This document shows positions 31,796-64,000 of a stretch of 64,000 bases of DNA, piece by piece. Location: the NCBI GenBank assembly GCA_964035545.1, contig OZ037765.1, positions 33,913,504 to 33,977,503 of the forward strand. The letters run 5' to 3'. This DNA is from Bugula neritina. Taxonomy: Eukaryota > Animalia > Bryozoa. Each line of letters starts with the position of its first letter. The first letter of the stretch is position 1. Under the pieces are notes generated by a model. That model was not told the DNA's origin and made no database searches. It saw only the letters and a list, made by a program, of their open reading frames with translations. The translations under genes and the position numbers were made by a program.

Positions 31796-31821
31796 GTGCA
31801 AACTGATCAGGTTTGGAATTA

Positions 31822-32030
31822 GAGAGCATCTCTGGTCTAGGGGTTAGAGCGTTTGCCTATAAGTTAACACAAAGTCATGGGTTCGAACCGACAAAGGCCA
31901 TTCATGATGCTAGGAAAAGCATTCAGTCATAATTGGCCCTGTGCCTCATCTGAGTAAGTCTATAGCCAAATTTAGCAAAAAAACCTTTTCCATCAGGGGC
32001 TTCTGACACGGATGAGAACTGTAAATTTTT
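31822..32030 (+). mobile_element. tRNA-derived SINE (also about 38188-38400, 44139-44350, 46685-46890)
   Basis: TGGTCTAGGGGTTAG...GGGTTCGAACC head followed by a conserved non-tRNA body. Confidence 0.7.
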
Positions 32031-32139
32031 GTGGATTTTATTAGGTTTAGAATAATTGTGTTGATTCAAAGAGCTTTACTTTGACTGCTTTATATGTCAG
32101 CTACGTACACCTGAAGGGTATTTTAATACTTTCAACAAT

Positions 32140-35100: not shown

Positions 35101-36325
35101 GTTGAAGACGTATTTTGTTCGCTTCTTTCACATGTTTCATTAAAACCACTGTTTTTTTGTGCGTCTTACATTATATGCTTTAGTGCGTTGGTAACCCAAA
35201 TGAAGGGTTGGAGTTGGATTTTGCTCAGTGGGCTGACCATCCTTATGATTATGATTATGATAGTCTGCTGTGCTCTCTGTAATCTACAGCCATTATTGGT
35301 GACTGATGAAATTTAGAATTTGAAGTAAAAATGTGTTATTTTTACCTGTGCCATTTTACTAGAAATCTATATCTAGCTTTTATATAATATTCTTGTAATT
35401 TTTTCATTATAGCAATGAATAAATTACATTGTTTCCACACTAATATTTTATATATTTATAGTTTATTTGAAAGCTTACGTTGTTTATTGTGGATGTTGAG
35501 TGCTGCAGAAACTGACCACTATTTTCAAAATTTAAAAGGAAAACAAGTTCCTGGTGCAGAAGTGGCAGAATATGTAATACAATTTTTTTCAAATTGAAGT
35601 TAAGAAATGGGGTCATTTCAGCATTCATAAGCTGCACATAATAGCTTATGTGTATATTTATATGGTGTGGACTTGCTATTACTGCGAGCTACAATATTAC
35701 TAGCATGGGTGGTTGATTTAACCTCTTAGTAGTTCCCATGGCTCACATACAATAAAATTCTAGTTGAATAGAATATTTACTATTGTAAAGTACAAAACAA
35801 ATGACCAGAATATTTCATTTGTTAAACAGAAATTTTGTAATACTACTGTGGATTGGCTACTGTACATTAGCTAGATGTAGGCGGAGTCTACACTACTTAG
35901 CCATCCAGATGCATATACTAAAGGGCAATTCAAAAACCAGCCAATCAGTCATGTACCAAATTCACAGATGTTTACTGCAAGCTTCCAATACTAAACAATA
36001 ACCCATTCAAGCTGCAACAACAAATAACTACTAAGCTGGCAGTTATGTAATAATTGGCCTTAAGTTGCAAAAGTGTACCAGGTCATTTTTCTAGACATGA
36101 AATTTTTAATTGCATTTTATAAACACTTAATTTAGACATTTTAAAAAATCATTTCAAGAGTCATCAATTTAAGATATGAAATTAAATAATGCATGAAAAA
36201 AAAGTTGCACAACTAGCTTTTAGAAGCATGCATTTTGCAATTGAACTTGCAGAATTTTATATCAGTTACAATGGTAAGACATTGACCTGGTACACTTCGC
36301 TGATTGGCTGAGTTTTACATGGTCT
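32140..36325 (-). mobile_element. ISL2EU/PIF-Harbinger-group DNA transposon, fold-back derivative with about 1.1-kb inverted arms
   Basis: Termini AGACCATGT...ACATGGTCT. AT target duplication, confirmed by the empty site caacaATtagaatgg in sister repeat units (about 38497, about 44448). DDE_Tnp_4-type transposase inside. Confidence 0.9.
33193..33918 (-). pseudogene. DDE_Tnp_4 (ISL2EU/Harbinger-like) transposase with a nonsense codon
   Basis: LMKLR (HTH), IIDCTE, YKK.NT..YLVAITP.G, GGRA*D (TAA at 33552-33550, same frame), MADRGF, RIHVKRAI (catalytic E replaced by K). Confidence 0.9.
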
Positions 36326-41600: not shown

Positions 41601-42444
41601 ATAAAACTCCCCCCCCCCCTTACTTGAGTTACTCTCACAGACCTCGGACTTGCACACAGGTGTGCTAACCATTACACACCACAACTGCTTGGTTATCGCT
41701 ACACTACAGAGCAAGAATGTAATGACACACACTATGGTCTTAGCAGGTTCTGCTAATATTGAGAAAAGTTAACTAAATTTACAGTCGTAGAAAAATTCTG
41801 CAAATGTTTATTTTTATGTTTTTTTTCTTATTTTAATCTTTAAAAGTTATTTTTTGTTGCATTTCTTATATTCAACTATCATATACAATAAAATCCATAT
41901 TACTATACTCTCATACTGGTTAGAAGTTATGACAAGTTAGTTCAGAGTGATCAGTAATAATTTTTGCAAAAGCTTATTTCCAACAAAAATTAGAGCAGCA
42001 TGGAACATTTATAAGTTCAGCTTTGAATATAACTTAGTTCAGCATTGAGCATATCTAAGATCATCATTGAACAGAAATGAGATCACCATTAAACATATAT
42101 AATATCACTATTGAACATAAATAAGATCACTATTAAACATATATAATATCACTATTGAGCATAAATAAGATCACCATTGAAAATATATAAGCTCACCATT
42201 GAACATATATAAGATCACCATTGAACATATATAAGATCACCATTGAACATAACTTGGCTCATTGTGATAAATACAAAGAATCAACTTCACAACTATTTAT
42301 ATCAACATTGATCTAACATACTATTCACTGTGAACAGTACCTGACACTAATTTCTATTCACTGCTAGTCAATTTAGGGATCCAAAAAACGAGAGGTTTTA
42401 GTTGTCAGCTAATGTTCACTCTAACACTAATATTTCTCTCTGTG
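38692..42444. mobile_element. Non-autonomous CACTA/EnSpm-like (CMC group) element
   Basis: Perfect 20-bp TIR CACAGAGAGAAATATTAGTG; TA duplication confirmed by the empty site ggtagtaagTAgtagttaac in sister units; subterminal 21-bp repeats at 42050-42250; no transposase ORF seen. Confidence 0.8.
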
Positions 42445-45400
42445 TAGTAGTTAACAGGTAGTAGGTAACAGGAAACAAGTAACAGGTAACAGGTTATAGC
42501 ACTTAACATGTAGTAGGTAACAGGTAAGAGGACAATCATTTAAGGGAAACTACATAATTATAGGGAAAATTTCCTAATAAAAGTTGATTTTAATTATTTT
42601 GACCATTCTGATTATTTATTGAATATGAATTAATTTGTTACAGCTGCTTCTATTGGTTGAGTAAAAGGCTGCAACTATAGCATAGAAATGTTGTGTTACC
42701 AGCATATATTGTGTACCTCTAAGCTACACACTGCATGTGTTACTCTGTGAGTAAAATATGTGTCTCTCCTAACAAGTCTCAACAATACTAACCTCAGTAC
42801 AACTTGCTGAGAACTAAAGTCTAAAACTTGCTTGAAACAGCTACTCTTTCTGTTTCTAGTTGAAACCTTTAGAAAAGCTTATTTGCATGATTAACTAAAC
42901 TTTGCACATATTCAACTAATTATTCAACTATATACATTATTCAATATTATGATAGTTTAAACATACTGTATTGTTGCTGATCTTGGTTTAGAAGAAGCTG
43001 CTACACTGAATCAGATATAAATATACTGTAAACAATGTTGATGAAAATCACTGCTTTTAATTAGATTGAATATTTTTGCAGCTTTTTAATTCAGGTCACA
43101 GTTGTAAAAGAAAGTAAAAATTTCAAAACACATCTTACTAAAGTAAATAATATATTCAGCTTTAGTACAACAACTAGCTTTTATATAAGTTATATTTATC
43201 TTGTCAATAATTCTTAAATGTATTGAAAGTGTAATATCTCATACCACAACTTAATTATTAAAGAGTAAAATGTAGATTATTTATCTTTCATATAAGTTAT
43301 GGACTTGACTAAATTATTAAAAATTTAGCTTTAGTATAAAATACATTATTTAATAATCTCCCATACTAGTTATATTACCAATCATGATACAATCTATAAA
43401 TATATTTAAAAGTGTAATATCTGTTTATAATGAACTATTTATTAAATAAGAATGACTAACTTACTCTCTGGTCACATCTCAGTATACTGACTCAGATGTT
43501 GTATAGCCATCTATATTACTGAGTAGATATAATTCCTGTAGCTCACTAACTGGACGCTGTTCAAGAAGAACACCCTAGCTATATTGAGCTATATTACTCA
43601 GAGTTGACTAGTAACAGCAATGGTTGCTAAGATACTATGATACAAACAGACAATGGAATATTCTATCAATAGCAACTACTATTTTGCTCATTCTATAAGT
43701 TGTTTGAGGTTGTCACATTCATATTCAGTGTAATTGTAGACTGGCTTAATCAATATGTGCTGTGCTAGTCCTGAAGTGTATACACTTATGCATGCATTCA
43801 AATTGTGCAAACTGGGTGTCAGGTAAAAATGGTACCGGCAAAAATACTGGCACAAGTAATAATGGCACAGGTAATAATGGCACAGGTAATAATGGCAAGG
43901 TAAAAATGGCAAAGGTGGCAAAGTAGGTAAAAATAGTACATTTTCAATATTGAGGTTTGGGTGGGGGTTGGGGGTTTGGAATGGGGGTTTTTGGATTTAG
44001 AAAATTTACCACCAGTGTGCCATTTTTACCTGTGTCATTTTTACTCGTGCCATTTTTACCCGTGCCCTTTTTACCTGTGCCCTTTTTACCGGTACTATTT
44101 TTAACTAAAATTGTGCAAACTGATCAGGTTTGGAATTAGAGAGCATCTCTGGTCTAGGGGTTAGAGTGTTTGCCTATAAGTTAACACAAAGTCATGGGTT
44201 CGAACCGACAAAGGCCATTCATGATGCTAGGAAAAGCATTCAGTTATAATTGGCCCTGTGCCTCATCTGAGTAAGTCTATAGCCAAATTTAGCAAAAAAA
44301 CCTTTTCCATCAGGGGCTTCTGACACGGATGAGCACTGTAAATTTTTGTGGATTTTATTAGGTTTAGAATAATTGTGTTGATTCAAAGAGCTTTACTTTG
44401 ACTGCTTTATATGTCAGCTACATACACCTGAAGGTTATTTTAATGTCAACAATTAGAATGGATTTCTAAACATAAACAACTCTGTCATTGATTTCATGAT
44501 AAAATGTGGAGCAGGCATGTATATTGTGACACTAACGGGTAGTAGGTAATAAGTAGCGGGTAGCAGGTAATAAGTAGCAGGTAGTAGGTAACAAGTAGCA
44601 GGGAATAAGTAACATGTTATAGTAGGTAGCAGGTAGTAAGTAGTAGTTAACAGGTAGTAGGTAACAGGAAACAAGTAACAGGTAACAGGTTATAGCACTT
44701 AACATGTAGTAGGTAACAAGTAGCAGGGAATAAGTAACATGTTATAGTAGGTAGCAGGTAGCAAGTAGTAGTTAACAGGTAGTAGGTAACAGGAAACAAG
44801 TAACAGGTAACAGGTTATAGCACTTAACATGTAGTAGGTAACAAGTAGCAGGGAATAAGTAACATGTTATAGTAGGTAGCAGGTAGCAAGTAGTAGGTGA
44901 CAGGTAGTAGGTAACAGGAAACAAGTAACAGGTAACAGGTTATAGCACTTAACATGTAGTAGGTAACAGGTAAGAGGACAATTATTTAAGGGAAACTACA
45001 TAATTATAGGGAAAATTTCCTAATAAAAGTTTATTTTAATTATTTTGACCATTCTGATTATTTATTGAATATGAATTAATTTGTTACAGCTGCTTCTATT
45101 GGTTGAGTAAAAGGCTGCAACTAGTATAGAAATGTTGTGTTACCAGCATATATTGTGCACCTCTAAGCTACACACTGCATGTGTTACTCTGTGAGTAAAA
45201 TATGTGTCTCTCCTAACAAGTCTCAACAATACTAACCTCAGTACAACTTGCTGAGAACTAAAGTCTAAAACTTGCTTGAAACTGCTACTCTTTCTGTTTC
45301 TAGTTGAAACCTTTAGAAAAGCTTATTTGCATGATTAACTAAACTTTGCACATATTCAACTAATTATTCAACTATATACATTATTCAATATTATGATAGT

Positions 45401-47559
45401 TTAAATATACTGTGTTGTTGCTGATCTTGGTTTAGAAGAAGCTGCTACACTGAATCAGATATAAATATACTGTAAACAATGTTGATGAAAATCACTGCTT
45501 TTGATTATATTGAATATATTTGCAGAGTTTTAATTCAGCTCACGGTTGTAAAAGAAAGTAAGTGTTGACACACATCTTACTAAAGCAAATAATATATTCA
45601 GCTTTAGTATATGATGTACAACAACTAGCATTTATATAACTTATATTTATATTGTCAATAATCTTTAAATATAATCAAATGTTTAATATCTATTTATCAT
45701 AACTTATTTGTGGCAAAATAAAATGTAGATTATTTAACTTTTATATAAGTTATGGACTTGACTAAATAATTAAATATATAGCTTTAGTATAAAATACATT
45801 ATTTAATAGGCTCTCATGTTAGTTATATTACCAATAATCATACAATCTATAAATATATTTAAAAGTGTAATACCTGTTTATAATGAACATTAAATAAGAA
45901 TAACCAACCTACTCTTTGGTCACATCTCAGTATACTAACTCAGTACCACAACTCAGTATACTGACTCAGATGTTGTATAGTCATCTATATTACTGAGTAG
46001 ATATAATTCCTGTAACTAACTGGACGCTGTTCAAGAAGAACACCCTAGCTATACTGAGCTATATTACTTAGAGTTGACTAGTAACAGCAACGGTTGCTAA
46101 GATACCATGATACAAACAGACAATAGGATGTTATATCAATAGCAACTACTATTCAGCCTGTTTGAGGTTTTCACATCCATATCAATAGAAACTAATATTC
46201 AGCTCATTGTATAACCTGTTTGAGGTTTTCACATTCATATTCAGTGTAACTGTAGACTGCAGCTTATTCAACATGTGTACTAGTCCTGAAGTATTTACAC
46301 ATTTACGCATGCATTCAAATTGTGCAAACTGGGTGTCAGGTAAGAATGGCACTGGCAAAAATAGCAGAAGTAAAATTGGCACAAGTAAAAATTGCACAGG
46401 TAATAATGGCACAGGTAATAACCGCAAAGGTAGCAAAATAGGTAAAAATAGCACATTTGCAATATTACGGTTTGGGCTTGGGGGGTTTGGAATGGGAGGG
46501 TTGGGGTTGGGGTTTGGAAAAATCTAACATCAGTTTGCCATTTTTACCTACTTTCCTTTATGCCATTTTTACCTGTGCCATTTTTACCTGTGCCATTTTT
46601 ACCTGTGCCATCTTTACCTGTGCCATTTTTACTTTTGCCACCTTCACCTTAAATCGTGCAAACTCATCATGTTTAGAATAATTATGGAGCAGCCATGATC
46701 TAAGGGTTAGAGCATTTGCTTAATGAACACAAAGCGATGGGTTCCAACCCGACAATGGCTATTCATGATGCTAGGAAAAGTACCCAGTCATAATTTCTCC
46801 TGTGCCTCATCTGAATAAGTCCTTAGCCAAATTTAGCAAAAACCTTTTCCATCCAGGGGTTTCTCACAAAGATGGAAGTTATAACCTTTCTTAGGTTATA
46901 TTAGGTTTAGAATAATTGTGTTGATCCAAAGAGCTTTACTTTGAATGCTTTATATGTCAGCTACAAACGCCTGAAGGTTATTTTAATACTTTCAATAATT
47001 GGAATGGATTTCTAAACATAGACAACTCTGTCATTGATTTCAGATAGCATGTGGAGCAGACATGTATATTGTGACACTAACGGGTAGTAAGTAACATGTG
47101 GTAGGTAGCAGGTAATAAGTAGCAGGTAGTAGGTAACAGGTAGTAGGTAAAAGGTAGTAGGTAACAGGTAGTAGGTAGTAGGTAACAGGTAGTAGGTAAA
47201 AGGTAGTAGGTAACAGGTAACAGGTAGTAGGTAACAGGTAACAGGTAGTAGGTAACAGGTAGCAGGTAACATGTAGTAGGTAGTAAATAGCAAGTATTAG
47301 ATAGATTTAAGCTGGGCATTTAAGTTCATAAAGTAAATTAAACTACTTGTTATTATAAGATGTGTGATCACTTCCTGTTAAAGTTTACCTAATCTATTGA
47401 ATTAAAATAGAAATTGTACACCATGAAAAACGTGTTTGTCTAAAAAAGAAATTATTATAGTGGACAATCATTTGGTTGAGTGTATCACCACATAGCACTG
47501 CAGGACTTGCGTGTAATAATTTATGTTATAAATATTATATTATATTATATTATTATATA

Positions 47560-50444: not shown

Positions 50445-53400
50445 CTGAGTAACAGTTGAAAATGTATATATATATAAAGATGCAGTCATCAGTTTTATAA
50501 ATTCACAGGCTTTTCAATATAGCAAAGTCATGTATGTATTGGTATCTTTTCAAATGACTAACTCAAAGCAACAGCTGTTAGAATGAATATGAAAGGCAAA
50601 TTAATTCCTTAATCATTTAGATCATTTATATTACACATACAACAATTGTTCCAGTAATATTTGAGAGATTTGTTTCAGTTTAGAAGAGTAGATTAGGTTT
50701 GGCTGGGAATTTGAAGCTGTATGACTTCTAACTCAATGATATGAAATCACCTCAAGACTCTCATTATGTTATACTCAACTCACTCTCTCATACAGTTAGT
50801 AGACATGCATATCCTAGTGTGGTGTAACTTAGTGCATTAAACCTTCAACATGTCTAACTGTACAATACTACACCTACTGTATAGTGGGTCACACCTACCT
50901 GTTTGAATATAGTGTAGAGGTCATGGTGACAGGCATGTTTATACATGGAGGATACAAGAGCTCTAATCATTAGAGATCCATACACAGGATGTCTCTTTGA
51001 TATGAATGCTACAAGTAAATTGTATAACAGGAAGATGCAAAATAGAAATGAGACTCTTTGCCAACATAAACTAATATCATATATGCAGTACAAGATAGTG
51101 TGTGTTACTTACACTCCATGCTAGATTTCACTACTAGCAGGTCATCATAGTTCAGTCTAGTCATAGCTTCAGCATTCTCTAATCTAGGAACTTTAGCAGG
51201 TGGGGGTGAGATACATTCCGACTCTTCTTTTTGTGAGTTTCCGATATCAAATCTGTCTATACCTCTATGGCCATAGTCACTCCTCTCTGTGAAATAAATA
51301 ACACCACTGTATATTCTTGAAATAATAAGCAGATAATTTCAAATACGCAAATCTTAATAATTTTAAAAGTTTCTAATAATAATATATAATTAATAGAACA
51401 TAGTATATACAACACACAAATGATAAACATGTTTATATCTGATCATGTCTATTACTCATCCCTATAACACAAAACAGTTCATATCTGTAAGTGGACTAGT
51501 CTAATCAAGTAAAAGTACACCACATTGTAGTCACTGGAGATAGCTGCGTCATACTGAAACTCTCAGTCTGTTCACATGAGGCTGATATTACATCATCACA
51601 CCATACAACTCTCTAAAATAAGCTTTTAAAAGAATACCTAGGACTATAGTTACTATAAGTATGTTGCTGCTAAAATAGAGTAATTTATAATTTTACTGTT
51701 GAAAAAACTTTAGTTGATTGGAGAGGGTATAATCATTGCTGCTACTATACAACTGTTCTTTGCATTATCCACCCTGTGAGATAGTCCACATATTAGAGCC
51801 GCTGCTAATGCCATTATAAATAAATCAATATGCAATGCAAGAGGGACAACTCACTATCAACTGTGCTTGACTTAAATGATTTGACCTTCACTAGAAACTT
51901 TGCCTAAAGTAACGACTTTGTCTAACTTACGGAATAAATATCTGTTGTGTAATAAACAACTGTGTAAACACGAATAGCATATTATTCTCTTTTTATAGCA
52001 GCTTTTTACCTCCACTACATGTTTCCAGTATAACAACTTTTGGTTTGCCAGCCATTCCTGTGAAGTTCAAAGGGGTCAAAAGGTCATACACATCTGTTAG
52101 TTTGACTCGTTTCAGGTCTGTACTATAGATGTGGTTGTTCAGCCCTCCATGAGTCATGATAACCAACACATGACATCCCAGATCTTCATGTTCCTCTTTT
52201 GTCACCTCAGATTTTATAGCAGACAGCATTTCCTATAAATTACCAGACAGTAAAATATTGAAATGGAATGGCGCATATAAAAAAAGACCATGAATCTATT
52301 TTTTTTAATTTAATGTTTTTAAAATAACCTACCTCAGCCTTCAAGTCTGTGTGTGTCACAACATGAAACTTGAGAGATTTCAACATGGCAGACATATTCT
52401 CAACATCTACATCTGAACCTTTCCTACATAAATCGGGTCTCTTATCAAAGTTCATGTTGTTTATTATCAGAGCTCTTCCTCGTTTTCTAGTCATAGTAAA
52501 CACCTGAACACAAAATATAACTAGCTACATGTTATATTGACATAGAGGTCATGCAATGCATCTAAACATGTTGAGTAACAATCTGATATTCTAATAACTA
52601 GAAACAATGTTTTGAAGTAATTTATTTTACCGTTATTTAACACATGTAATGATTACCCATAGTACATTATAATACAATTTCTTCTTCCTGTATACTATCC
52701 AACACATTCTATACATGAAATGAAGAATAATAACTAAAACTTTGTCAAATGGGAGAATTAATAAACATTAGCATTAGATATGTGATCACCTTGTCAGTGT
52801 TTGAGAACAGCTGCTTTATCTTTGGGTTACTAGTGGGATTCAGTCTGAGTCTTATAAACTTCATCTTTTCAACTTCCTTTCTATCAGGGAGCAGATTCTC
52901 ATCCTCATCAGAGAGATCACTGAGATCGTTATTGGCTATTGCAGAAGTTGTTCCATGATCTGATTGGCTACTGTTTGCAACTGCAAAGTATAAACATACT
53001 GCATTACAAAGGAGGACAGATGAAACTAGAAGTAGCAGACACAGTTTTCTTCCTGCAAATTTATTGAAGAATAAATGTAATTGAAACAGAAACTCAATAG
53101 ATTTTAGTTACCAGGTAGAGCTGAGATTTTCTGAGCCCTTCTAACTTTCAGATCTTTCACAAATTCTGTTAACATACCAATTTCTCTGTCCGACAATGTC
53201 TGACCTATACATAACATATTTTTAAATACTTGTTAGTCTTTTATTCTTGTGGTATCTTCAAATGATCAAGAGAACATAATAGTGTGTGACATTGAGTGAC
53301 AATTTGTCCAACACTCATGCAAGAAGAATATATAATTTTCAAGCCACCAGACAGTGATGTAAGTAAACTTACATGGGTATAAAAGTGCACTGGGAATCTC

Positions 53401-56400
53401 CTCATTGTTGCACAATGTCATTGAAAATCCAGTGCAGAGTCTAGCATCTGGTGGTGAGTATTTCAAGGAGCGAAGACACCATTGTGGGTGGAGCACTTTC
53501 ATAGGACAGGAAACTTCTAGCAGAATACAGTGAGCACAGTAGCATGTAGTGACTGGTCTACTCGCTGTCCAAGTTTGTAGAACATGTCTAAGAATGTTGT
53601 TGTTGGTGGTGATGAGTCTCTCCCACATTCTGCTGATGTTGGCAGCATTAGATGACACATAAAGTGATACTTTTCTAGACTTGTAGTCATGTACCAGCTG
53701 TGTGTAGAATCCATCTTGATAGACATTGGCTCCATTTCTTCTCACTTTTATCCTGGGACAGTCACCGGGAAACAACTCCAACAAGCCGACTGTCATTTGG
53801 TGGTAGACATATTGTGGCAGGGCTAGACCATTGAACTGTGTCTCAACTTGGAGAAGCATTTCCTTTGGTGGAGAGTACGCAGTAAAAAAAAACTTCCGGG
53901 CAAACTGAGGTACAATAAACTCAGGTTCTTCCGATTTGGTTTCTACCGGACCGTGCAGCAACCGGAATGTCTGAAGTACGCTGAGAGCAAGGTTAACATC
54001 CTTCGCTTTACTGAATGATGTCTCTTTTTCAATCAGATGAAAAAGAAGATGTTTCATCATCAAACCAGTGTCAGTGAAATGATTAACAGATTTCTCAAAG
54101 TCCTGCTTTTCAAAACGTATTCCAGTCTGTGAATAGTATGGCTGGAACTCATCAACCCTACTCTGCCATATGTTTGAATCATGATGATACAAGACACAGA
54201 GGAGTTTGGTAACTTGTGAAATCTTGTGGAATACGTATGGCCGGAGAGAGCTGATCTCTTTATACCACAAGACTTTGCCGCAGTCATGCATGTATGTGAG
54301 GATTATGTCCAGCTGACTTGACTCAATGTGTTGAAGTTCTGTTTGTATGTAATTCAGTATCTCATCAAAAGTACTGTACACAGAGGGAATAAACAGCACT
54401 TTTTCATTCACTTCTTCCCAAACCAGGGGTAAAGGTTTCACAAAATGTTGACTGCTTTGAAGAAGAGAATCTTTGATCAGGTCAAACACTTCGTACTTAT
54501 CATCTTTCCCCACCTCATAAATGTCCTCACCAAGAAAAACTCCTTCAGCTGACTCACTAAAATACTTGATTTGAGCAAACTCTCCACCCAATGCTTTTTC
54601 TTCCATGATCATCTCCTCACACAGTTGATTGGAAGTTTCAAGAAAATGTTTTTGAAGCTTTTGGAATTCTGTACTTTGAAACTTATCTTTATGTGTGAAG
54701 ATAAGTTTTGGAGCACCCAGAGTTGGGTTAGCCAGATAGAGGTGAGACATGTAATCAAAGGCTAATCTTCTAACAGCTTCTCTGTGTGTTGATTCACTTG
54801 AAATTTCATCATACTGTTCCATGTTGACTACTATGACTGGAATACAGTTCTGTCTCAGTGTCAGTTGATAGGTGATATGGTAGACCTCCTGGCCTCCCAT
54901 ATCAATGACACGGAGTACTGTACCATCCACCTCCACCTCTTCAACATTAAACACCTTTGTTGTCTCATCTCTCACAGCATCTGGCCCTCTGTTAGTCAGA
55001 ACTCTCTTTCTGTCAGCATTCTGTAATGTTCTGATTAGACTGGTCTTTCCAGCCATAGTATTACCCAGCACAGCTATAGTAGCGAATGGAAGACTTCTAC
55101 CAGCTCCTTTAGCCAAGTCTGTGTAGTATTGTCTCACAGCATCTACTCCTCTCTCACATACTTCTAGTGGAGGAGATGTGAGAGTATTACAACGTCTAAC
55201 ATGCAGTGTATGAAGCTGAGCTAGCTGTAGTATCTCAGGATCTAAGGATGTCAGGGAGTAGTTGGAGGATACATCCAGTTCCTGCAGACTACTCAGTGTG
55301 TACACATGCAGGAGATGGTAAACTAGTGAACTTATTTGATGATATGTTCAGCTCCTCTAACTTCTGTAGATTCTGCATGCTGTTAAATAACATACATAAT
55401 AAGAGATGTAAAAAGCAATATGACACATATAACATACACACTGTAGAAGAGAATGCACATAGATAATCGAATGATGAAATATTGTACATGCTTTTCCTAT
55501 TGCATGGACATCAGATTTTCTTACAAATACTTCAGCGCATGGAAGTACTTCAAGCTAATTGATAAAGTGGCAGGTCAAAGCTGAAAAATACTACTAATTC
55601 TCTTTATATTTTGACCAGAACTTATAGCAGCTATAGTATAATTGGATATCATTTCCTGCAGATCTTGACTTCATGCAGTAATTAGCTCACTTTCCTTGTT
55701 GAGGGATAATTCTTAATAGGGTGAACTTGCTAATAGGTCCTTCATATTAATAGATAACAGAAGCTTTAAAGTGATGATGTAATGAAGGGTAGTGTGTGTG
55801 ACCTTTGCATAAACTGTTCTGGTAAATATCACACATAATAGAGAGTTGAATAATTATTTAAAAAGATGTCATGATACACAATATCAGTATAGTCTGGCAG
55901 AACTGGGGGTTAGGTCCCAATCTCGGATAAAGTTTTTTTCTATTTTGAGAGTGCAGGTAAATGTTTCCAGGTGGGTGTGGACCTGCCACCCTTGAGCATT
56001 TCGAGAAATCCAAGATGCGGTTGTTGTTGACCCCTTTTATAACTTTAAAAAGCATAGCTAAAGTTTTAAAACTGACAATAACTATTACGTTGGCAGCTCA
56101 AAAAACTTTTTTGATAGGCATGCTTATAGTTTGAAATAAATTGCTATTTAGCTCATATGACAATGACATTGCATTTTAATTTTACAGAACCTCTTTTAGC
56201 TTTATTTGGTGGACATATTTGTAATGACCATATAAAATTACACCATATATAGTAAATTTTCATGAATTTAGAACAAACTGATGCAGAGATGAAAGGAAAT
56301 TATAAACACGGCAAGGCTATAGTAGGTTAAATTTGAAAAAATGTATGATTAAGGCTTAGCTTAGTTACCCTAGGGTGTCATTTGCCTATTACTCAATAAT

Positions 56401-59400
56401 GCACATGACAAAGGCACATGCATCTTTATTATATCAATTTAAAAAGATTTCAAAGCATTGGAACCTTAAATTTAGCCCCGATGGATAGGTGCATTTGAAT
56501 CATAAAAAATTGTCTGGTGCCTGGCGGCCATCTTGAATTTCTCTAAATGCTCAAGGGTAAGAAATCCACACCCACTTGGAAACATTTACTTAGACCCTAT
56601 ATTTGAATAATCAGGAGAGAAAAAACTTTATCCGGGATTGCGAACCTAAGTCAAAAATTGGCATTTTTCTGCCACACCAGTATATATCTATTCCTCTACA
56701 GAACTTGATAAAATATATAGTTTATTGTCATCTGGTAAAAGTTATATGACTTTACTGTATCCTCTTTGAACATAATATAATATTCACATCTTAATAATCA
56801 CTGCCTTTTATCTTAACTGTGCATACTGTAGATAGTCAATGTATATCTATGCTAGCCTGCAGCTGACACAAACCAGCTATACATACTAACATAAGTTTGC
56901 TAAATGTACCACTCAAATAATAGCAGCATGAGGTAGAAGTAGAACAACTCAGCCAAGCAACACTCAACAACAACCAGAAGAGTTGAGTCACCACACAATA
57001 CAAAGTTACACCTTCTACTGGTAGCTGGTCTAAGATCAGATAGCTGTGAGATAATACACTTATACCCTTAGAGTAAACAGTTATTAGTACTGCACACACT
57101 GTAAGCTACAAACTCTGTAGCTGTCAACCAATAGAAATATTGTCTCCTTAACCAATGACAATGCAAGTCACTTTCATAACCAATCATAACTAAGTGTAGG
57201 GCCACACTACTGCCACACACATTGCAAAAATGTATTAGCCAGTGGTGTTGGCGTTAAATTTACTGCTCGCTACAGGTGTTTGGATATTATAAAAGCGGGA
57301 ATGCAAACTATATAAAACTGTTTTAAAAGTTAAATCGTAAATTAAAATAAAAAAGTGTGCTTGCTAAATATTACATGATAATAAGCCAATTAGCTCAATC
57401 AGCTGAAAATCCCGCTCATGACGTCCAATTTTTGGGCTAAACGTGTGGCCCTACACTAAAAACTTTCTGAACTGAACAACCTGCTGTTATAATTAAATAG
57501 CTAGCTAGCAGTATGAATAGTCACTAAATAGCTAGCTAGCAGTATGAATAGTCACTAAATACTAGCTAACAGTATGAATAGTCACTAAATACTAGCTAAC
57601 AGTATGAATAGTCACTAAATACTAGTTAGCAGCAGGGTTGGGGTAATTGTAATTTGTAATTGTAATTGGCTGTAATTAATTACATTTTTTCAAGTAATTG
57701 AATGTAATTTGTAATTGAGGCTTAAAAATGTAATTGTAATTGTAATTGTAATTAATTACATATCTAATGTAATTGATTTTTACAATTACTTTATAATTAC
57801 ATGTCAATTACTTCAAACTTTTAAATCTTAAAAAACTCCTTCTTTTTCTACAATGCCTACTGTTAAATAACAAGTTCAGATAGTTAGGTCAATATAGTAG
57901 GGTCATTCCATGCCAGCTCACCGAATTGCACGCGTCTATTTGCGTCTCAGATTTTGTTCATGTTTACACCAAATAGACCTACACATGCCTCAAGTACTCT
58001 TCTTCAGTATTTCTGACCTGACACAAATTTTTTTGAGAACTGACTACTTTTGTGGACAAAGGTTGAGAAACATTTTGAGTAAAATTTGTGATTTCTACTT
58101 TTAGACTAATCTATAAACGTCTATATCTCAATCATTTTTCTAGCCTGAGCCTTAAAATTTGCTGTGTGATTTGATAATACCTATCAATTTGCACTAGTAG
58201 CAACACATATTACAGAATACTTTGTGTGCATATATGCAAAGTCATTGAATATGAACAAATCTTTGTAAATTTTGAAAAATTTCAATTACTCGCCTAATCA
58301 AATTTTAAATTACTTATAAATTGGTTTAAAAGTATAAATCACAAATTTTCCTCAAAATATTTTCCAACCTTTGTTCACCAAAGTAGTAATTTCGCAAAGT
58401 GTTTTTGTGTCAGGCCAGAAATATTCACGAATGGTGATCTGAACATGTGTAGGGCCATTTAGTGTAAATATGAGCAAAATCTGAGACACAAAGACTTGGG
58501 ACCCCTTGAAAGTTGGTTGATTTGGTATGGAATGATATAATAGTATCACTGTAGAAAACAAAAGAGGTTCACCACTGTCAACACTGCCCCTGGTAGCTAG
58601 ACCCTAGAAGTGACTTCTATTTATTCCTTGTGAGAACAAAAGTAATTGTAATTGTAATTAATTACATTGCCATGTAATTGTAATTGTAATTAATTACATT
58701 TATTTTTACTGTAATTATAATTGTAATTGTAATTGACAAATCTTCATGTAATTGTAATTGTAATTAATTACATTTACATGTAATTGACCCCAACCCTGGT
58801 TAGCAGTATGAATAGTCACTAAATACTAGCTAACAGTATGAATAGTCACTAAATACTGCAGCTAGCAGTATGAATAGTCACTATATACTAGCTAGCAGTA
58901 TGAATAGTCACTAAATACTAGCGAGCAGTATGAATAGTCACTAAATACTAGCTAACAGTATGAATAGTCACTAAATACTAGCTAGCAGTATGAATAGGTG
59001 GGAGTACTCTGTCTAGTGTATATTCCTCTCACTTGTTCACCATGATCAGCTATTATATATATTACAGTATCATCTTACACTATAATACAATACACACCTG
59101 TTTGGTAGAGTTGACAGTTCACATTGATTCATGTTCAACTCTCTCAATGATAGTAAGGATGTGAATATATTGTCAGGTAGACCTTCAGATAGCTTATTCT
59201 CTAATATATTCAATACCTCAAGATTCTTCAGTGAAGATATGCTGTAACATAACATACAGATATAGAAACACTCTGTAGCTCATACATACAAAGTGTGATA
59301 ACAGAGTTTTAGAATATTATTATGACTCTGTATTTCTATCATCTAACCTCTAGACAACCTTGGGCATAGCAGTTGTATTATGATGAGTGACAATTAAGGA

Positions 59401-62400
59401 AAAGCTATTATAATGAAAGAGTAGAAAAATCTTTTAAACCCAAACCCCAAACCTCAAACCCCTACCTCAATAACCCTTATTTATTGAAAATATAGGCAAT
59501 TTGTTAGTTACTTTACCATTTGTGTCATTATTACCGGTGCCATTATTACCGGTGCCATTATTACCGGTGCCATTATTACCGGTGCCATTATTACCGGTGC
59601 CATTTTTACCAGGCACTGTATACACTATATTACCATACTCATACAGTTTAATTTCCTTGCTGAATATTGCTATGGGGGTGTTAAAAAGACCACACTTTCA
59701 TGTAGCCATGTTACAGAGAGAACTTTGACTACTATAAATAACTCTAAACAAGTCACTCTGTCTACCAGAAGAAGAGATATATAATTCCATCACAGTAATA
59801 ACTTATATCAGTTACAGAACAGTATATCAACACCAGATGTTGCAGGTTTGGAGAAATAACCTCCAGATATTATGAGCTGCCAAACTTACTACTTCCTTCA
59901 AGATTGCAAATATTATTATAAAAACTGAGTGCCCATATAGCAAATTATTATTTCACAATTTGTAGCCTCAGCATACAAAGCTGGAGTAGTAACTGAATTT
60001 TAGAAAGTTAACATGACTCTGTAATTCTGGCATCTAACCTTTAGACAACCTTGGGTACAACAGTCGTACAGGTAGTTGTGGTATGACAATGTGGGTTAGA
60101 TTAGAGGGAAGATAACTCTAATATACAGAAGTAGTTTCTTGTATAGCCTAAATACTAGCAAGTCATAGACTGTGAACTAAACAGACAGGAAGATCAGTCA
60201 GTAAGAATGACTGAGTTAGCAATAAGATAGTATATATATGATGCTACGGTAAATTGATTATGGGACATTATATATATTACAGTATCATTCTACACTATAA
60301 TATAATACACACCTGTTTGGTAGAGTTGACAGTTCACAGTGCCACATGTGCAACTCTCTCAATGATAGCAAGGATGTGAATATATTGTCAGGTAGACCTT
60401 CAGATATGTTATTCCCTGATATATTCAATACCTCAAGATTCTCCAGTGAAGATATGCTGTAACATAACATACAGGTTATAATAAAAACAAAACAAAACAA
60501 AACATGAAAACTGCAATATGCATATATAGCCTGTGTTTCTTGAATGTTTCTATGGAAGTATTAGAGACCACACCCTTATCTAGCCATGTTACAAAAAGAA
60601 CTTTGACCAATAAAACAAGTCACTCTGTCTACCAGAAGAAGAGACATATAATTCAGAATGGTTTGTGAATATCATTATAAAAACTGAGTGCCCATAGCAA
60701 ATTATTTCACAATTTGTAGCCTCAGCATACAAAGCTGGAGTAGTGACTGAATTTTAGAAAGTTAACATGACTCTGTAATTCTGGCATCTAACCTTTAGAC
60801 AACCTTGGGTACAACAGTCGTACAGGTAGTTGTGGTATGACAATGTGGGTTAGATTAGAGGGAAGATAACTCTAATATACAGAAGTAGTTTCTTATATAG
60901 TCTAAACACTAGCAAGTCATAGACTGAGAACTAAACAGGCAGGAAGATCAGACAGTAGGAATGACGGAGTCACCAATAAGATAGTATATATATATATACT
61001 ACTACGATAAATTAATTATGGGATATTATATATTTAGTTACCAATAAGATAGCATGTATGCTAATATGATAAATTAATTATGCATAATTAATTTATCATA
61101 GTATAGCATATATATCATATGGGATATTATACATATATTTATCCTGGAAATATTCTACACTATAATATAAAACACACCTGTTTGGTAGAGTTGGCAGTTC
61201 ACAGTGGCTCATGTCCAACTCTCTCAATGATAGTAAGGATGTGAATATATTGTCAGGTAGACCTTCAGATAGGTTATTATATGATATATTCAATACCTCA
61301 AGATTCTTCAGTGAAGATATGCTGTAACATAACATACAGGTATAGAAACACTCTGTAGTTCATACATACAAAGTGTGATAACAGAGTATTAGAATATTAT
61401 TATGACTCTGTATTTCTACCATCTAACTTGGAGACAACCTTGGGCATAGCAGTTATATAATGAGTAACAATGAGGGGATAACTACTATAATGAAGAAGTA
61501 GAAAGCTCACTTCATATATAACCTAGGTACTAGCAAATCATAGACTGAGAATAAACGTAGTCAAGCAGCAGTGACTGAAAAAGTAATTAGTAAAAGTTTG
61601 AATGAGTTTGTTACAGTTTGGTTAGAGCTGCATGCAGAGTTCCTATGGCAGAGGTGGGCAACTGGGCCTCCTAGGGTCACCTGTGGCTCTTTGCCCATTT
61701 TTCAGCAGCCCTTTTAATGCTTAAGATAAGCAAAAACTGTCATTGTTATTCTGATTAACACAACAGATGTTTGGTGACAAATTACTTTATTATAATAAAA
61801 TTTATTATGTGTACAATCATGTGGCCCTTCATTTTGCTGACCTCTGAACTTGGCCCTCGAGTAAAATAAGTTGCCCACTCTTGCCCTATAATATGACAGT
61901 AGTATGAGAGACAGTGTTGGTTAGATTAGAGGAAATATAACTCTAATAAACATAGAAAGTGGTTTACTATATTATATCCTAAATACTAGCAAACTGTAGC
62001 CTGAGCACTGAATAAGTTGAAAGGCTATAGTTAGTGTTTTAATATATAACTTTGAATAGTTGTGACGCTAGAGCAATGATAGACCATGATCCTCAAATCT
62101 AGTGTTAACTGTACAAAACCTTTGCTATGTATACAGACAGTTGCTGAGTTACTGATGAAATATTATATACAAATATAAATCTAGTGTTAACTGTAGAAAC
62201 CTTTGCTATGTATACAGACAGTTGCTGAGTTACTGATGAGATATTATATTTATTACATAGTATGAATAGTCACTAAATACTAGCTAGGAGTATGAATAGT
62301 CACTAAATACTAGTTAGCAGTATGAATAGTCACTAAATACTAGCTAACAGTATGAATAGTCACTAAATACTAGCTAGCAGTATGAATAGTCACTAAATAT

Positions 62401-63756
62401 TAGCTAGCAGTATGAATAGTCACTAAATACTAGCTAGCAGTATGAATAGTCACTAAATACTAGCTAGCAGTATGAATAGTCACTAAATACTAACTAACAG
62501 TATGAATAGTCACTAAATACTAGTTAGCAGTATGAATAGTCACTAAATATTAGCCAGCAGTATGAATAGTCACTAAATACTAGCTAGCAGTATGAATAGT
62601 CACTAAATACTAGCTGGTAGCATAAATAGGTGAGAGTACTCTGTGTAGTACATATTCCTCTCACTTGTTTATAACATTTTATTGGCAATATATTTACATG
62701 TTATATTTATTACAGTATCATTCTACACTACAATATAATACACACCTGTTTGGTAAAGTTGACAGTTTACAGTTCTCCATGCTCAACTCTCTCAATGATA
62801 GTAAGGATGTGAATATATTGTCAGGTAGACCTTCAGATAGGTTATTATCTGATATATTCAATACCTCAAGATTCTTCAGTGAAGATATGCTGTAACATAA
62901 CATACAGGTTATAATAAAAACAAAACAAAACAAAACATGAAAACTGCAATATGCATATACAGCCTGTGTTTCTTGAATGTTTCTATGAAGGTATTAGAAA
63001 CCACACCCTTATCTAGCCATGTTACAGAAAGAACTTTGACTAATATAAAACAAGTCACTCTGTCTACCAGAAGAAGAGATATATAATTCACAATGGTTTG
63101 TGAATATCATTATAAAAACTGAGTGCCCATATAGCAAATTATTTCACAATTTGTAGCCTCAGCATACAAAGCTGGAGTAGTGACTGAATTTTAGAAAGTT
63201 AACATGACTCTGTAATTCTGGCATCTAACCTTTAGACAACCTTGGGTATAACAGTAGTATAGGTAGTTGTGGTATGACAATGTGGGTTAGATTAGAGGGA
63301 AGATAACTCTAATATACAGAAGTAGTTTCTTATATAGTCTAAACACTAGCAAGTCATAGACTGAGAACTAAACAGACAGGAAGATCAGTCAGTAAGAACA
63401 ACTGAGTTACCAATAAGATAGTATATATATATACTACTACGGTAAATTGATTATGGGATATTATATATTTAGTTACCAATAAGATAGCATGTATGCTAAT
63501 ATGATAAAGTAATTATGCATAATTAATTTATCATAGTATAGCATATATATCATATGGGATATTATACATATATTTATCCTGGAAATATTCTACACTATAA
63601 TATAATACACACCTGTTTGGTAGAGTTGACAGTTTACAGTCCCTCATGTTCAACTTTCTCAATGATAGTAAGGATGTGAATATATTGTCAGGTAGATCTT
63701 CATATAGGTTATTCTCTAATATATTCAACACCTCAAGATTCTCCAGTGAAGATATG
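50298..63756 (-). CDS. Gene A: spliced LRR-Roc-COR-caspase (Roco-caspase fusion); 5' end outside window; one 4-bp frameshift, so possibly a null allele or recent pseudogene
   Basis: Thirteen GT-AG exons with compatible phases: 63756-63613, 62889-62746, 61321-61178, 60456-60313, 59241-59098, 55379-53373, 53204-53112, 52980-52790, 52503-52333, 52232-52010, 51286-51113, 51008-50899, 50444-50298. Motifs: LRRs, P-loop GNTMAGKTS, DMGGQ, THKD, caspase MTHG / ETCSG / KLYLFPG. Confidence 0.85.
50899..51008 (-). CDS. Gene A caspase p10 exon
   Basis: ttgtag|CA...CAG|gtaggt; SFISKRHPVYGSLMIRAL...DLYTIFKQ (equivalent to SWR..GSWFIQ). Confidence 0.88.
51113..51286 (-). CDS. Gene A caspase intersubunit linker / p10 start
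   Basis: tcacag|AG...GAGT|gtaagt, phase 1-1; ...RLNYDDLLVVKSSME resembles the D-F-L-x-x-x-S-T strand of p10. Confidence 0.8.
52010..52232 (-). CDS. Gene A caspase p20 exon 2 with catalytic His/Cys
   Basis: ttatag|GAA...GGAG|gtaaaa; VLVIMTHG (His) and MAGKPKVVILETCSG (Cys, equivalent to QACxG). Confidence 0.92.
52333..52503 (-). CDS. Gene A caspase p20 exon 1
   Basis: ttcag|GTG...GAG|gtaggt; VFTMTRKRGRALIINNMNF...RKGSDVDVENM...FHVVTHTDLKAE, the canonical start of a caspase large subunit. Confidence 0.9.
52790..52980 (-). CDS. Gene A linker exon 2 (191 nt, phase 1-0)
   Basis: ttgcag|TT...AAG|gtgatc; open acidic linker ...DLSDLSDEDENLLPDRKEVEKMKF...TDK. Confidence 0.75.
53112..53204 (-). CDS. 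Gene A linker exon 1 (93 nt, phase 1-1)
   Basis: gtatag|GT...CCTG|gtaact; open frame CQTLSDREIGMLTEFVKDLKVRRAQKISALP. Confidence 0.75.
53373..55379 (-). CDS. Gene A large exon: last LRRs + Roc GTPase + COR domain (4-bp insertion at 55306-55309)
   Basis: Acceptor ttaacag|C (phase 2), donor CCAT|gtaagt (phase 1). Roco-typical LTSPPLEVCERGVDAVRQY LRR C-cap, G1 GNTMAGKTS, G2 ETT, G3 DMGGQEVY, G4 THKD, COR-like motifs (LPLVW, YMHDCGKVLWY, FIVP). Matches the 679-aa ORF 53266-55305. Confidence 0.92.
55890..56679. mobile_element. Non-autonomous DNA transposon, possibly Academ-like
   Basis: Imperfect TIRs TAGTCTGGCAGAA / TTCTGCCACACCA plus internal inverted GGATAAAGTTTTTT; GTA flanking duplication; absent from the paralogous gene B intron. 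Confidence 0.55.
57199..57451. mobile_element. MITE with the same GGGCCACAC termini
   Basis: TA|GGGCCACAC...GTGTGGCCC|TA; absent from the paralogous intron near 12050. Confidence 0.7.
57500..58997. repeat. Same 30-bp minisatellite, split by the hAT insertion
   Basis: Tandem units on both sides of 57633-58798. Confidence 0.93.
57633..58798. mobile_element. Non-autonomous hAT element inserted in the 30-bp satellite
   Basis: TIR CAGGGTTGGGG, perfect 8-bp TSD GTTAGCAG, subterminal TAATTG repeats. Confidence 0.9.
59098..59241 (-). CDS. Gene A LRR cassette exon (144 nt, phase 2-2)
   Basis: Same splice sites; ISSLKNLEVLNILENKLSEGLPDNIFTSLLSLRELNMNQCELSTLPN. Confidence 0.9.
60313..60456 (-). CDS. 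Gene A LRR cassette exon (144 nt, phase 2-2)
   Basis: Same splice sites; ISSLENLEVLNISGNNISEGLPDNIFTSLLSLRELHMWHCELSTLPN. Confidence 0.9.
61178..61321 (-). CDS. Gene A LRR cassette exon (144 nt, phase 2-2)
   Basis: Same splice sites; ISSLKNLEVLNISYNNLSEGLPDNIFTSLLSLRELDMSHCELPTLPN. Confidence 0.9.
61649..61883. mobile_element. Old hAT-type MITE
   Basis: CAGAGGTGGGCAAC...GTTGCCCACTCTTG with a degenerate 8-bp TSD. Confidence 0.5.
62259..62628. repeat. Same 30-bp minisatellite, about 12 copies
   Basis: Tandem units. Confidence 0.93.
62746..62889 (-). CDS. Gene A LRR cassette exon (144 nt, phase 2-2)
   Basis: Same splice sites; ISSLKNLEVLNISDNNLSEGLPDNIFTSLLSLRELSMENCKLSTLPN. Confidence 0.9.
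63613..63756 (-). CDS. Gene A LRR cassette exon (144 nt, 2 LRRs, phase 2-2)
   Basis: ttacag|C...CAAACAG|gtgtgt; ISSLENLEVLNILENNLYEDLPDNIFTSLLSLRKLNMRDCKLSTLPN. Confidence 0.9.
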
Positions 63757-64000
63757 CTGTAACATAACATACAGGTATAGAAACACTCTGTAGCTCATAC
63801 ATACAAAGTGTGATAACAGAGTTTTAGAATAATATTATGACTCTGTATTTCTACCATCTAACTTGGAGACAAACTTGGGCATAGCAATTATATAATGAGT
63901 AACAATGAGGGCAGAACTACTATAATGAAGAAGTAGAAAGCTCATTTTATATATAACCTAGGAACTAGTAAATCATAGACTGAGAATAAACGCATTCAGG

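Follow-up and report, generated by a model that had tools for sequence, protein, structure and literature searches.

Probable homogenising exchange and diversifying selection on binding-face codons in the LRR cassette array of a bryozoan LRR–Roc–COR–caspase gene

Described systems and the bryozoan locus

Among described systems, the closest to the locus reported here is the exon-shuffling LRR-ROCO family of the brown algae Ectocarpus and Saccharina, a set of proposed immune receptors in which recombination between recent paralogues is concentrated in the LRR region (Zambounis et al. 2012, PMC3341825; Teng et al. 2024, PMC11378527). In the LRR exons of the Ectocarpus ROCO genes, positions 3, 5, 7 and 8 of the LxxLxLxxN motif, on the concave face, evolve under positive selection (PMC3341825). 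Alternative splicing of LRR exons is a further trait of the algal system. The Bugula gene shares with this family an N-terminal LRR array followed by Roc and, putatively, COR, and the encoding of 24-residue LRRs on small repeated exons set between phase-2 introns. It differs in its animal host; in the presence of a caspase after the putative COR domain; and in the content of the repeated exon, which is 144 nt long and holds two LRRs, mainly the second being hypervariable. Further, Ectocarpus has inverted or inactivated LRR exons in its introns, whereas a blastn search of 202 kb of Bugula sequence gave 30 full-length matches, all on the same strand, with no inverted or inactivated LRR exons in the array introns. 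Hence, the Bugula pattern agrees with homologous recombination, as opposed to the shuffling of unexplained cause in Ectocarpus.

Plant NLR and Cf/Xa21-type genes present a second parallel: their solvent-exposed xxLxLxx residues are hypervariable, and they undergo unequal crossing-over and gene conversion (PMC3645687, PMC6032283). As in Bugula, diversifying selection does not extend beyond the x residues of the LRR beta-strand, unequal exchange within and between genes alters the repeat number, and the paralogues are clustered. However, plant LRR arrays mostly do not devote one exon to each repeat unit, and their switch is an NB-ARC rather than a Roc–COR module, with no fused caspase. In venom genes, coding regions outpace introns, and the snake three-finger toxins display the segment switching termed ASSET (PMC2474615, PMC2711939). 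There too, the exons of recent duplicates exceed their introns in divergence and short segments change several nucleotides together; but the toxins are secreted and have no repeat array, whereas the Bugula changes are tied to set positions in the motif of a solenoid repeat and are found again in other cassettes. The peptide-binding exons of MHC genes, with their homogenised introns (PMC3434948, PMC3652749), likewise combine an excess of exon over intron diversity with recombination or conversion and balancing or diversifying selection, but do so across alleles and loci as opposed to tandem exons inside one gene; moreover, the exon framework is also homogenised in Bugula, which argues against its exons simply being older. 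Finally, the lamprey VLRs bear their variability on the concave beta-sheet, where that of the Bugula gene is also predicted to lie. They are, however, built by somatic copying of non-spliced donor segments into an incomplete gene, whereas the Bugula cassettes are all ordinary exons that have splice sites and lie in frame, in series and in germline order. Our literature search yielded no account of an LRR–Roc–COR–caspase family with cassette exons, whether from bryozoans or from other animals.

Gene anatomy and extent of the cassette array

The gene runs on the minus strand in the order LRR array, Roc GTPase, putative COR and caspase, and the window (the whole 64,000-nt stretch that was analysed) holds its 5′ sensor arm; all coding features given below are on that strand. 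The terminal LRRs, Roc and COR share a large exon (53440–55305), in which Pfam places the Roc GTPase at residues 77–168 (PF08477, 31.4 bits, cut-off 27), directly followed by a putative COR region with a weak COR-A match (18.2 bits, below the cut-off of 35.3). Homologues at 36–42% identity also carry PF08477, and several of them have PF16095; one is labelled MFHAS1 homolog by NCBI. Just upstream of the Roc exon lies an open frame (55289–55489) with a non-cassette LRR exon (LRR_1, E = 8e-4). The caspase family (Peptidase_C14, PF00656) is matched on both of two further exons, one with the N-terminal part of the domain (52240–52503, E = 2e-10) and the other (51993–52229, E = 1.5e-9) with the His (THG) and Cys (ETCSGG) motifs in its translation, the two catalytic motifs of the predicted caspase both being there.

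Each cassette exon is 144 nt long, encodes two 24-residue LRRs and is in phase 2 at each end, the junction codon being AG|C (Ser). This 2-2 phase is found in 30 of 30 cassettes, and since phase-2 introns flank every one of them, any number of cassettes keeps the frame. The array in the window's gene consists of nine tandem cassettes, of which the last, 3′-most exon (59098–59241) was recognised by its translation and splice sites, while four of the nine are situated past the window end (exons at extended coordinates 64638, 65962, 66988 and 68270). The cassette at 60315–60455 matches Pfam LRR_1 (29.6 bits, cut-off 20.6, E = 3.3e-7) and LRR_4 (27.7 bits, cut-off 27, E = 3e-6); against the PDB its peptide finds LRR chains down to E = 2.8e-16, the best alignments being with VLR-type and VLR-derived or designed 24-residue LRR modules (LRRV). 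One array intron contains a 30-bp minisatellite (62259–62629), which is found again in other array introns.

The wider survey (blastn, E ≤ 1e-3, over the 202 kb, with the clusters at C1 34.2–35.0 Mb and C5 lying outside this span) recovered 30 intact cassettes across six paralogous loci of the same architecture, and a first look at the genome flagged at least 190 cassette candidates. All cassettes of the array would be spliced in series into one transcript, because their frames and splice sites are intact and a Watersipora RefSeq model has the same repeats. These observations also bear on whether the copies are an artefact, being either falsely duplicated haplotypes or dead pseudo-exons. The heterozygosity range of marine invertebrates takes in divergences of 3–7%, such as those seen between the copies. 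But the region is free of N and lies inside a 35.6-Mb contig; the array extends over more than four periods with differing exons and indels; an open frame and both splice sites (ttacag|...|gtgtgt) are present in 30 of 30 cassettes; the same architecture is found at all six loci; and the same cassettes occur in independent JGI contigs of a related species (sample 3300002729) as well as in the Watersipora RefSeq protein. We therefore consider an artefact to be scarcely credible.

Divergence by site class in the duplicate and across cassettes

One step of the array is a young duplicate, which the original prediction, made from the letters alone, described as a two-exon block whose exons had diverged faster than its intron. 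Our MAFFT alignment of 60200–61570 with 62633–64000 bears out the duplication: copy 1 (60268–61563) is 94.8% identical to copy 2 (62701–63998), with the array running on past the window end. The first exon pair, comprising 60313–60456 (supported by translation, splice sites and Pfam) and 62746–62889, differs at 12/144 positions, and the second, comprising 61178–61321 (translation and splice sites) and 63613–63756, at 13/144, precisely the counts that had been made by hand. For the intron, where 3–4% had been claimed, the two copies (60457–61177 and 62890–63612) show 22 substitutions over 719 positions (3.1%) and three 2-nt indels; the flanks differ at 13/242 (3′) and 2/45 positions (5′). The full repeat is wider, with 60268–62169 corresponding to 62701–64599, and its outer part is more divergent (about 12% between 61564–62169 and 63999–64599); the 3% block is a young segment within an older tandem period of 2.43 kb.

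The exons have diverged beyond the intron (Fisher p = 3.7e-4; dN against the intron, p = 7e-5), and a second, independent duplicate of 3.2 kb (63103–66296 versus 65451–68607) repeats the contrast, with 40/432 differences in exons against 81/2696 in noncoding sequence (p = 4e-8). The excess is, however, confined to particular codons: 17 of the 25 exonic differences (8 of 12 in the first pair and 9 of 13 in the second) sit in the 12 x codons of the LxxLxLxxN/CxL motif, so that differences occupy 17/72 positions in the x codons, 8/216 at the remaining exon positions and 22/719 in the intron. Thus, the apparently faster exon is a mixture of sites, with a framework that follows the intron and x codons that are almost randomised. 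By Nei–Gojobori counting, the first pair has 9.5 nonsynonymous against 2.5 synonymous differences and the second pair 12 against 1. The predicted excess of dN over dS is not significant in these two exons alone (pooled dN 0.107, dS 0.055, ratio 1.9; p = 0.47) but is upheld over 11 independent sister pairs defined by their flanks (overall ratio 2.1, p = 0.0015).

In these 11 pairs, for which pN and pS were obtained by the counting method, flank divergence is 0.031, exon pS 0.045 and framework pN 0.034, whereas pN at the x positions reaches 0.254, far above pS (p = 5e-16). Positive selection on the exons, as the original prediction had proposed, is thus well supported at the ligand-face codons. 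Framework pN is close to the flank rate, and hence the sister pairs give no sign of purifying selection on the framework. Overall, the x codons of cassettes are about eight times more divergent than the surrounding introns; in each exon, randomisation is almost complete at about ten codons, and the remaining sequence diverges in step with the intron.

It may be asked whether the exons are instead ancient, in the manner of the MHC, with introns rendered young by homogenising tracts that end at the exon borders. Noncoding divergence is indeed mosaic along the 2.43-kb period, at 3.1% for its inner and 12% for its outer part, the paralogues are mosaic too, and the sister pS of 0.045 lies between the flank value of 0.031 and the pool value of 0.058, being indistinguishable from both. 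However, the non-x sites of the duplicate exons (8/216) fit the young intron (p = 0.66) and reject the 12% rate (p = 9e-6); pS in the closest pairs is 0.005–0.034, following the flanks; and the pool piS is as low as 0.058 though the intron classes are unalignable, implying that the exons themselves are homogenised. Accordingly, we regard ancient exons as improbable.

Across the pool of 30 cassettes, piN at x positions is 0.284, so that the divergence at these positions between sister pairs already amounts to 90% of that between random pairs. pN is flat (0.08–0.13) over flank divergences from 0.01 to 0.33, and pS climbs with flank divergence and then levels near 0.06. The transition:transversion ratio is 42:45 in x codons versus 79:44 in the flanks (p = 0.024), a contrast that fits near-randomised sites without separating the mechanisms behind them. 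Hypervariability falls mainly in the second LRR of each cassette, at codons 34, 36, 38, 39 and 41, corresponding to motif positions 3, 5, 7, 8 and 10. We modelled the binding face on a Watersipora homologue in place of the window's own array, and in the AlphaFold model of its LRR arm (P0049:60-400, pLDDT 86.6) motif positions 3–7 form the beta-strand; the x residues would, on this model, form a concave binding face.

Given that variation in the pool is limited to x codons, sister exons would come to differ mostly at these codons through neutral micro-conversion by itself as well, and the case for selection therefore draws on pool diversity and not just on the sister-pair contrast. A wholly neutral account, in which micro-conversion from a large pool randomises patches with no selection for diversity, would be served by the at least 190 candidates from the first look at the genome, by a pool from which conversion brings in mostly x changes and by the excess of near-identical exons within unrelated flanks. 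But unselected conversion with drift would even out the x codons just like the framework, contrary to the gap between piN(x) and piS; the variable sites are the very motif positions expected a priori to face a ligand; and every one of the 30 cassettes is distinct, the closest being four differences apart. We hence judge purely neutral shuffling to be very improbable.

Exchange among cassettes and its probable interplay with selection

The original prediction had also pointed to a patchwork of variants across cassettes, and this is real: the K/E alternative at codon 5 recurs, and LE (TTA GAG, codons 13–14) is shared by the exons at 59098 and 63613, the flanks of which are unrelated. At a larger scale, the 5′ and 3′ intron classes are incongruent among cassettes. 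For instance, cassette 68268 has a 5′ flank differing at only 4/250 positions from that of 64636 and a 3′ flank at 5/248 from that of 63611. Exon similarity is decoupled from intron similarity, with the most similar exon pairs (4–6 differences) sitting in unalignable introns. Near-identical exons in unrelated flanks number 9 against 3.3 expected (p = 0.016), and among flank-unrelated pairs, the effect of belonging to the same as opposed to a different gene on exon similarity is weak (p = 0.03–0.05). The introns around the exon at 59098 nearly match those of cassettes in two genes paralogous to this one (2/250 and 9/248 differences), although the exon itself is 9 nt away from those cassettes. 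The paralogues are themselves mosaic, with a Roc pS of 0.05–0.15, 5.8% divergence in the intron between Roc and caspase, and a pS of 0.4–0.67 at COR codons 373–496.

These observations speak indirectly for exchange between cassettes, but formal tests do not detect tracts inside the exons, and the predicted focus of conversion on the exons is not demonstrated as such. Applied to the 30 exons, with 38 informative sites, PHI gives p = 0.35–0.60, with incompatibility that does not decay over distance and homoplasy as high between adjacent as between distant sites, and Sawyer's GENECONV-type SSCF on exons only finds no conversion tracts (p = 0.15). On the exon plus its core flanks, SSCF and MCF give p < 0.001, a signal that class-specific flank ends could explain.

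Could point mutation and positive selection after simple tandem duplication, without any exchange between cassettes, have sufficed? The synonymous and framework divergence of sister exons does equal that of their introns, as if they were of the same age; neither PHI nor the exon-only SSCF reveals tracts; and many x-codon states are singletons in our sample. However, pairs with flanks at most 1.4% apart are already 9 nt different, with 5 of those 9 changes in six adjacent bases (codon 38 AGT>GAG, codon 39 TAC>AGC); two or three nucleotides are changed in 21 of 103 differing codons; x divergence is near its random-pair value even between sisters; multi-codon states such as LE, SME, YMWNCK and MESCEL recur in cassettes with unalignable introns; and the flank classes are mosaic. 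Mutation and selection by themselves are thus an unlikely explanation.

We instead consider it probable that homogenising exchange and diversifying selection on binding-face codons act together in this LRR–Roc–COR–caspase gene. Briefly, non-allelic homologous recombination would act on a core of about 205 nt common to all cassettes, namely the exon with about 20 nt upstream and about 45 nt downstream, the points at which intron-class homology stops. Unequal crossing-over and gene conversion, both within the gene and between paralogues, would repeatedly duplicate and exchange exon–intron blocks, thereby giving rise to the two-exon duplicate, and would keep the exon framework and introns of the same class nearly identical. 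Against this homogenisation, diversifying selection would hold about ten codons per cassette different, these being the solvent-exposed x positions of the LxxLxLxxN/CxL motif, mainly in the second LRR. New states may come from point mutation, from micro-conversion out of the cassette pool or from some mix of the two. Selection for ligand diversity is the putative cause, the protein being a putative intracellular immune or allorecognition sensor and its cassette array the likely mark of a germline-diversified recognition receptor.

Two other readings were tried and rejected. A Roc–COR exon dS of about 0.30 between paralogues had suggested that the LRR arrays were only a tenth as old as the remainder of the genes, but a profile along the exon traced the high dS to a single COR segment, and Roc with the next intron is only about 5% divergent. 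The NNC appearance of the variable codons, reminiscent of DGR-like adenine mutagenesis, results from low synonymous change, and a template repeat is not evident.

Colonial animals such as bryozoans need to recognise self and non-self and to defend against infection without antibodies; to our knowledge, the receptors involved are almost undescribed in such animals. In the present gene, a GTP switch and a cell-death protease would be coupled directly to a fast-changing, VLR-like LRR surface, with a sensor arm that follows the rules of plant resistance and brown-algal ROCO genes, namely copying, exchange and the maintenance of differences at the contact residues. It would constitute a third, independent case of such a design, here in an animal. 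It further offers a natural experiment, with dozens of near-identical introns around exons that differ only at contact codons, in which the interplay of concerted evolution and diversifying selection can be measured, and the array helps in choosing candidate receptors for binding and cell-death assays.

More speculatively, and with little likelihood in our estimation, the array might be a substrate for regulated diversification within the individual, beyond slow germline evolution. The idea starts from the phase common to all cassettes and from a conserved stretch of some 40 nt directly past each donor site, which can pair with the acceptor-proximal region; such complementarity between intron ends, to be compared with the docking and selector RNA pairing of Dscam-like mutually exclusive exon clusters, is present in some of the introns only. 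The routes may include combinatorial skipping of cassettes and somatic or clonal exchange or, alternatively, a targeted mutational process that rewrites patches of x codons. Were this so, each colony or cell would have its own set of LRR–Roc–COR–caspase sensors, with a possible role in allorecognition between bryozoan colonies.

The gene and its tandem array

The features at 59–64 kb of the window lie on the minus strand and center on a 144-nt exon, hereafter the cassette (named by its start coordinate), bordered by ttacag and gtgtgt. One base at its start finishes a split codon and two at its end begin the next (AG/C, Ser); thus, the introns on both sides are in phase 2. Each cassette encodes two 24-residue leucine-rich repeats (LRRs; Pfam LRR_1, LRR_4), and the top PDB matches of its peptide are VLR-type and designed LRR modules. 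Downstream of the array on the same strand lie a non-cassette LRR exon (55289–55489), a large exon (53440–55305) coding for a Roc GTPase domain scoring above the Pfam cut-off and a putative COR domain (weak COR-A match), and two caspase exons (52240–52503 and 51993–52229) carrying THG and ETCSGG motifs. This arrangement points to a gene of the order LRR array–Roc–COR–caspase, whose serial splicing and expression are predicted. The exons were searched singly. Among named proteins, the Roc-COR exon comes closest to RefSeq entries of the bryozoan Watersipora subatra (37–39% identity), and it is 76–81% identical to JGI contigs of a closer species. Domain content, together with the mode of evolution described below, suggests a role as an immune or allorecognition sensor.

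When the sequence is extended past the window end, the gene comprises nine minus-strand cassettes, five within the window (59098, 60313, 61178, 62746 and 63613) and four beyond it (64638, 65962, 66988 and 68270), built of two-exon units with a period of 2.35–2.43 kb. The duplicate of the original prediction (60268–61563 versus 62701–63998) is one step of this larger array, whose tandem assembly is probably correct. A 30-bp minisatellite with the unit AGTATGAATAGTCACTAAATACTAGCTAGC (up to 41 copies) turns up repeatedly in LRR-array introns, including in a paralogous gene (window 22867–24100, 57494–57632, 58801–58997 and 62259–62629; extended 69530–70455), and could promote misalignment and, with it, unequal exchange.

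Divergence and probable selection at the contact positions

The exons of this duplicate had been proposed to have diverged faster than the intron between them, with dN exceeding dS. Formal alignment exactly reproduced the hand counts of 12/144 (60313/62746) and 13/144 (61178/63613) differences, against 22/719 in the intron (p=3.7e-4), which also carries three 2-nt indels, and 13/242 in the 3' flank. The dN of these pairs is also higher than the intron divergence (p=7e-5) and exceeds dS (pooled 0.107 versus 0.055), but the ratio of 1.9, computed on just 65 synonymous sites, is not significant by itself. The faster divergence holds for the 12 codons at the x positions, i.e., motif positions 2, 3, 5, 7, 8 and 10 of both LxxLxLxxN/CxL motifs, chosen a priori, which hold 17 of 25 differences; elsewhere in the exons, eight of 216 positions differ (3.7%), a divergence like that of the intron (p=0.66). 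The excess does not extend over the whole exon. The reader's block is a young core (3%) within a longer repeat that is 12% divergent in its outer portion, and the exon framework, i.e., the exon outside the x positions, is compatible with the young rate while rejecting the old one (p=9e-6); hence, the exons were part of the recent duplication event. A second, independent duplicate (63103–66296 versus 65451–68607), with three exon pairs, presents a stronger effect: 40/432 exonic versus 81/2696 noncoding differences (p=4e-8).

For a wider sample, a contiguous 202-kb stretch was analyzed, with 30 cassettes in six paralogous loci, from about 190 candidate cassette places flagged by a genome search. 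All 30 are minus-strand, and each has an open frame and its two splice sites. Five of the six loci have the Roc-COR exon, either at full length or cut merely by the stretch end (locus g1), and four of these five have caspase exons. Across 11 phylogenetically independent sister pairs, chosen on flanks alone, flank divergence (0.031), exon pS (0.045; not different from the flanks, p=0.21) and framework pN (0.034) are set against an x-position pN of 0.254 (p=5e-16 versus pS; p=1e-42 versus flanks). On this sample the predicted excess of dN over dS is borne out, with an overall ratio of 2.1 (p=0.0015) by counting methods. Further, pN is nearly independent of flank divergence (0.08 at 1.4%, 0.12 at 33%), whereas pS tracks the flanks initially and then reaches a plateau near 0.06; across all 30 cassettes, piN at the x positions is 0.284 against a piS of 0.058.

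Variability is strong at codons 14, 34, 36, 38, 39 and 41, where as many as ten residues occur per codon, and codon 5 varies less. Codons 34, 36, 38, 39 and 41 are motif positions 3, 5, 7, 8 and 10 of the second LRR (codons 32–42), which is hypervariable, while the first (codons 7–17) is nearly constant save for motif position 8 (codon 14). Thus, the binding face would alternate between constant and variable rungs. An AlphaFold model (pLDDT 86.6) of the LRR arm from a Watersipora homologue that shares the double-repeat cassettes places a beta-strand at motif positions 3–7 in every repeat. In LRR solenoids, the odd strand positions face solvent on the concave side.

The sister-pair contrast alone is no proof of selection because exchange within a pool varying only at x codons would also look nonsynonymous. 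Relaxed constraint is unable to raise pN above the neutral rate. Formally, a site-specific mutational process might drive the x-codon variation, although we consider this improbable. As for exchange itself, if unselected, it would even out the x codons just like the framework and synonymous sites; what we observe is a diversity five times higher precisely at the a priori contact positions, with no two of the 30 cassettes alike. Since this diversity is kept despite the homogenized framework and synonymous sites, the positive selection originally proposed is still needed.

Probable exchange between cassettes and paralogues

The intron flanks group in classes with near-identity within a class (0/250, 1/250, 4/250), while members of different classes can be aligned only over roughly 20 nt before and 45 nt after the exon. 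The 5' and 3' classes of a cassette can be incongruent: 68268 matches 64636 upstream and 63611 downstream, implying breakpoints within or at the shared core. Likewise, exon likeness is decoupled from flank likeness (Spearman correlation 0.18): the most similar exon pairs (4–6 differences) lie in unalignable introns, whereas pairs with near-identical introns differ at 7–13 positions. With the remnant locus set aside, nine exon near-twins in unrelated flanks were found against 3.3 expected under independent assortment of codon states (p=0.016). The proposed conversion between cassettes is thus favored by mosaic flanks and exon/flank decoupling, but a Sawyer test on exons only was not significant; neither was a PHI test on the cassettes, and codon states inside the exon look freely associated. 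Sister pairs with flanks diverged by ≤1.4% present whole-codon rewrites (e.g., AGT TAC versus GAG AGC), with the incoming state present in neighboring cassettes of the same gene. The x-codon turnover may involve new mutations and/or very short conversion.

The paralogues too are mosaic. Divergence is 5–6% in Roc and in the intron following the large exon (Roc pS 0.05–0.15; intron 5.8%), and COR codons 373–496 (window 53818–54189, minus strand) reach pS 0.4–0.67 and pN 0.16–0.25. This island of deep divergence, set in genes that are homogenized elsewhere, was either shielded against conversion or brought in from a distant paralogue.

The intron ends, i.e., the first ~45 nt past the donor and the last ~20–40 nt before the acceptor (e.g., 60268–60312 and 60457–60496), are conserved across all 30 cassettes (identity 0.82–0.96), with the rest unalignable between classes. 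Within an intron, the donor-proximal element is predicted to pair with the acceptor-proximal region. Of eight introns, two reach a dG of -25 kcal/mol (z about -4.4) and another two -19 to -20 (z about -2.8), while the others pair weakly. These ends may have a role in splicing or in the choice of exons, or they may just delimit the exchanged core.

Related systems and the remnant locus

The closest known system is the brown-algal LRR-ROCO family, with one 72-nt LRR exon per repeat and phase-2 introns; there, the LRR region forms a hot spot of recombination between young paralogues, and the motif positions under positive selection coincide with those here (PMC3341825; PMC11378527). In contrast, the present host is an animal, its cassette combines one nearly constant with one hypervariable LRR, its gene has a fused caspase, and the 202 kb hold no inverted or dead intronic cassettes. 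However, in a related species one cassette copy (JGI contigs L046 7809–7952 and L047 1787–1930) has lost its frame, with several stops, amid intact neighbors; hence, dead cassettes do occur in the family. No publication on an animal family with the LRR-Roc-COR-caspase cassette-exon design emerged from our literature search. The general pattern, in which coding contact residues diverge beyond the introns while copies are made and exchanged, is documented for plant resistance genes, venom genes and the MHC.

The sixth locus (window 10274–22714, minus strand) is a remnant of a paralogue. Its cassettes (12809, 13369, 14382 and 22571, minus strand) keep frames and splice sites and are 84–87% like the others; the first 67 residues alone of its Roc exon survive (10274–10474), and no caspase exon was found in it. 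The intron between 14382 and 22571 contains a GC-rich (52–58%) stretch (about 15400–20700, plus strand) whose translations resemble putative Ty3/gypsy-type pieces, protease/RT-like and integrase-like. Elsewhere in the window, tandem repetition on a larger scale, with a ~6-kb period (31500–47300), is marked by paired 15-bp arrays of AATAATGGCACAGGT and its near-complement TGTGCCATTTTTACC (31511–31786, 37869–38152, 43820–44103 and 46561–46649), with GGTAGCA-type arrays adjoining.
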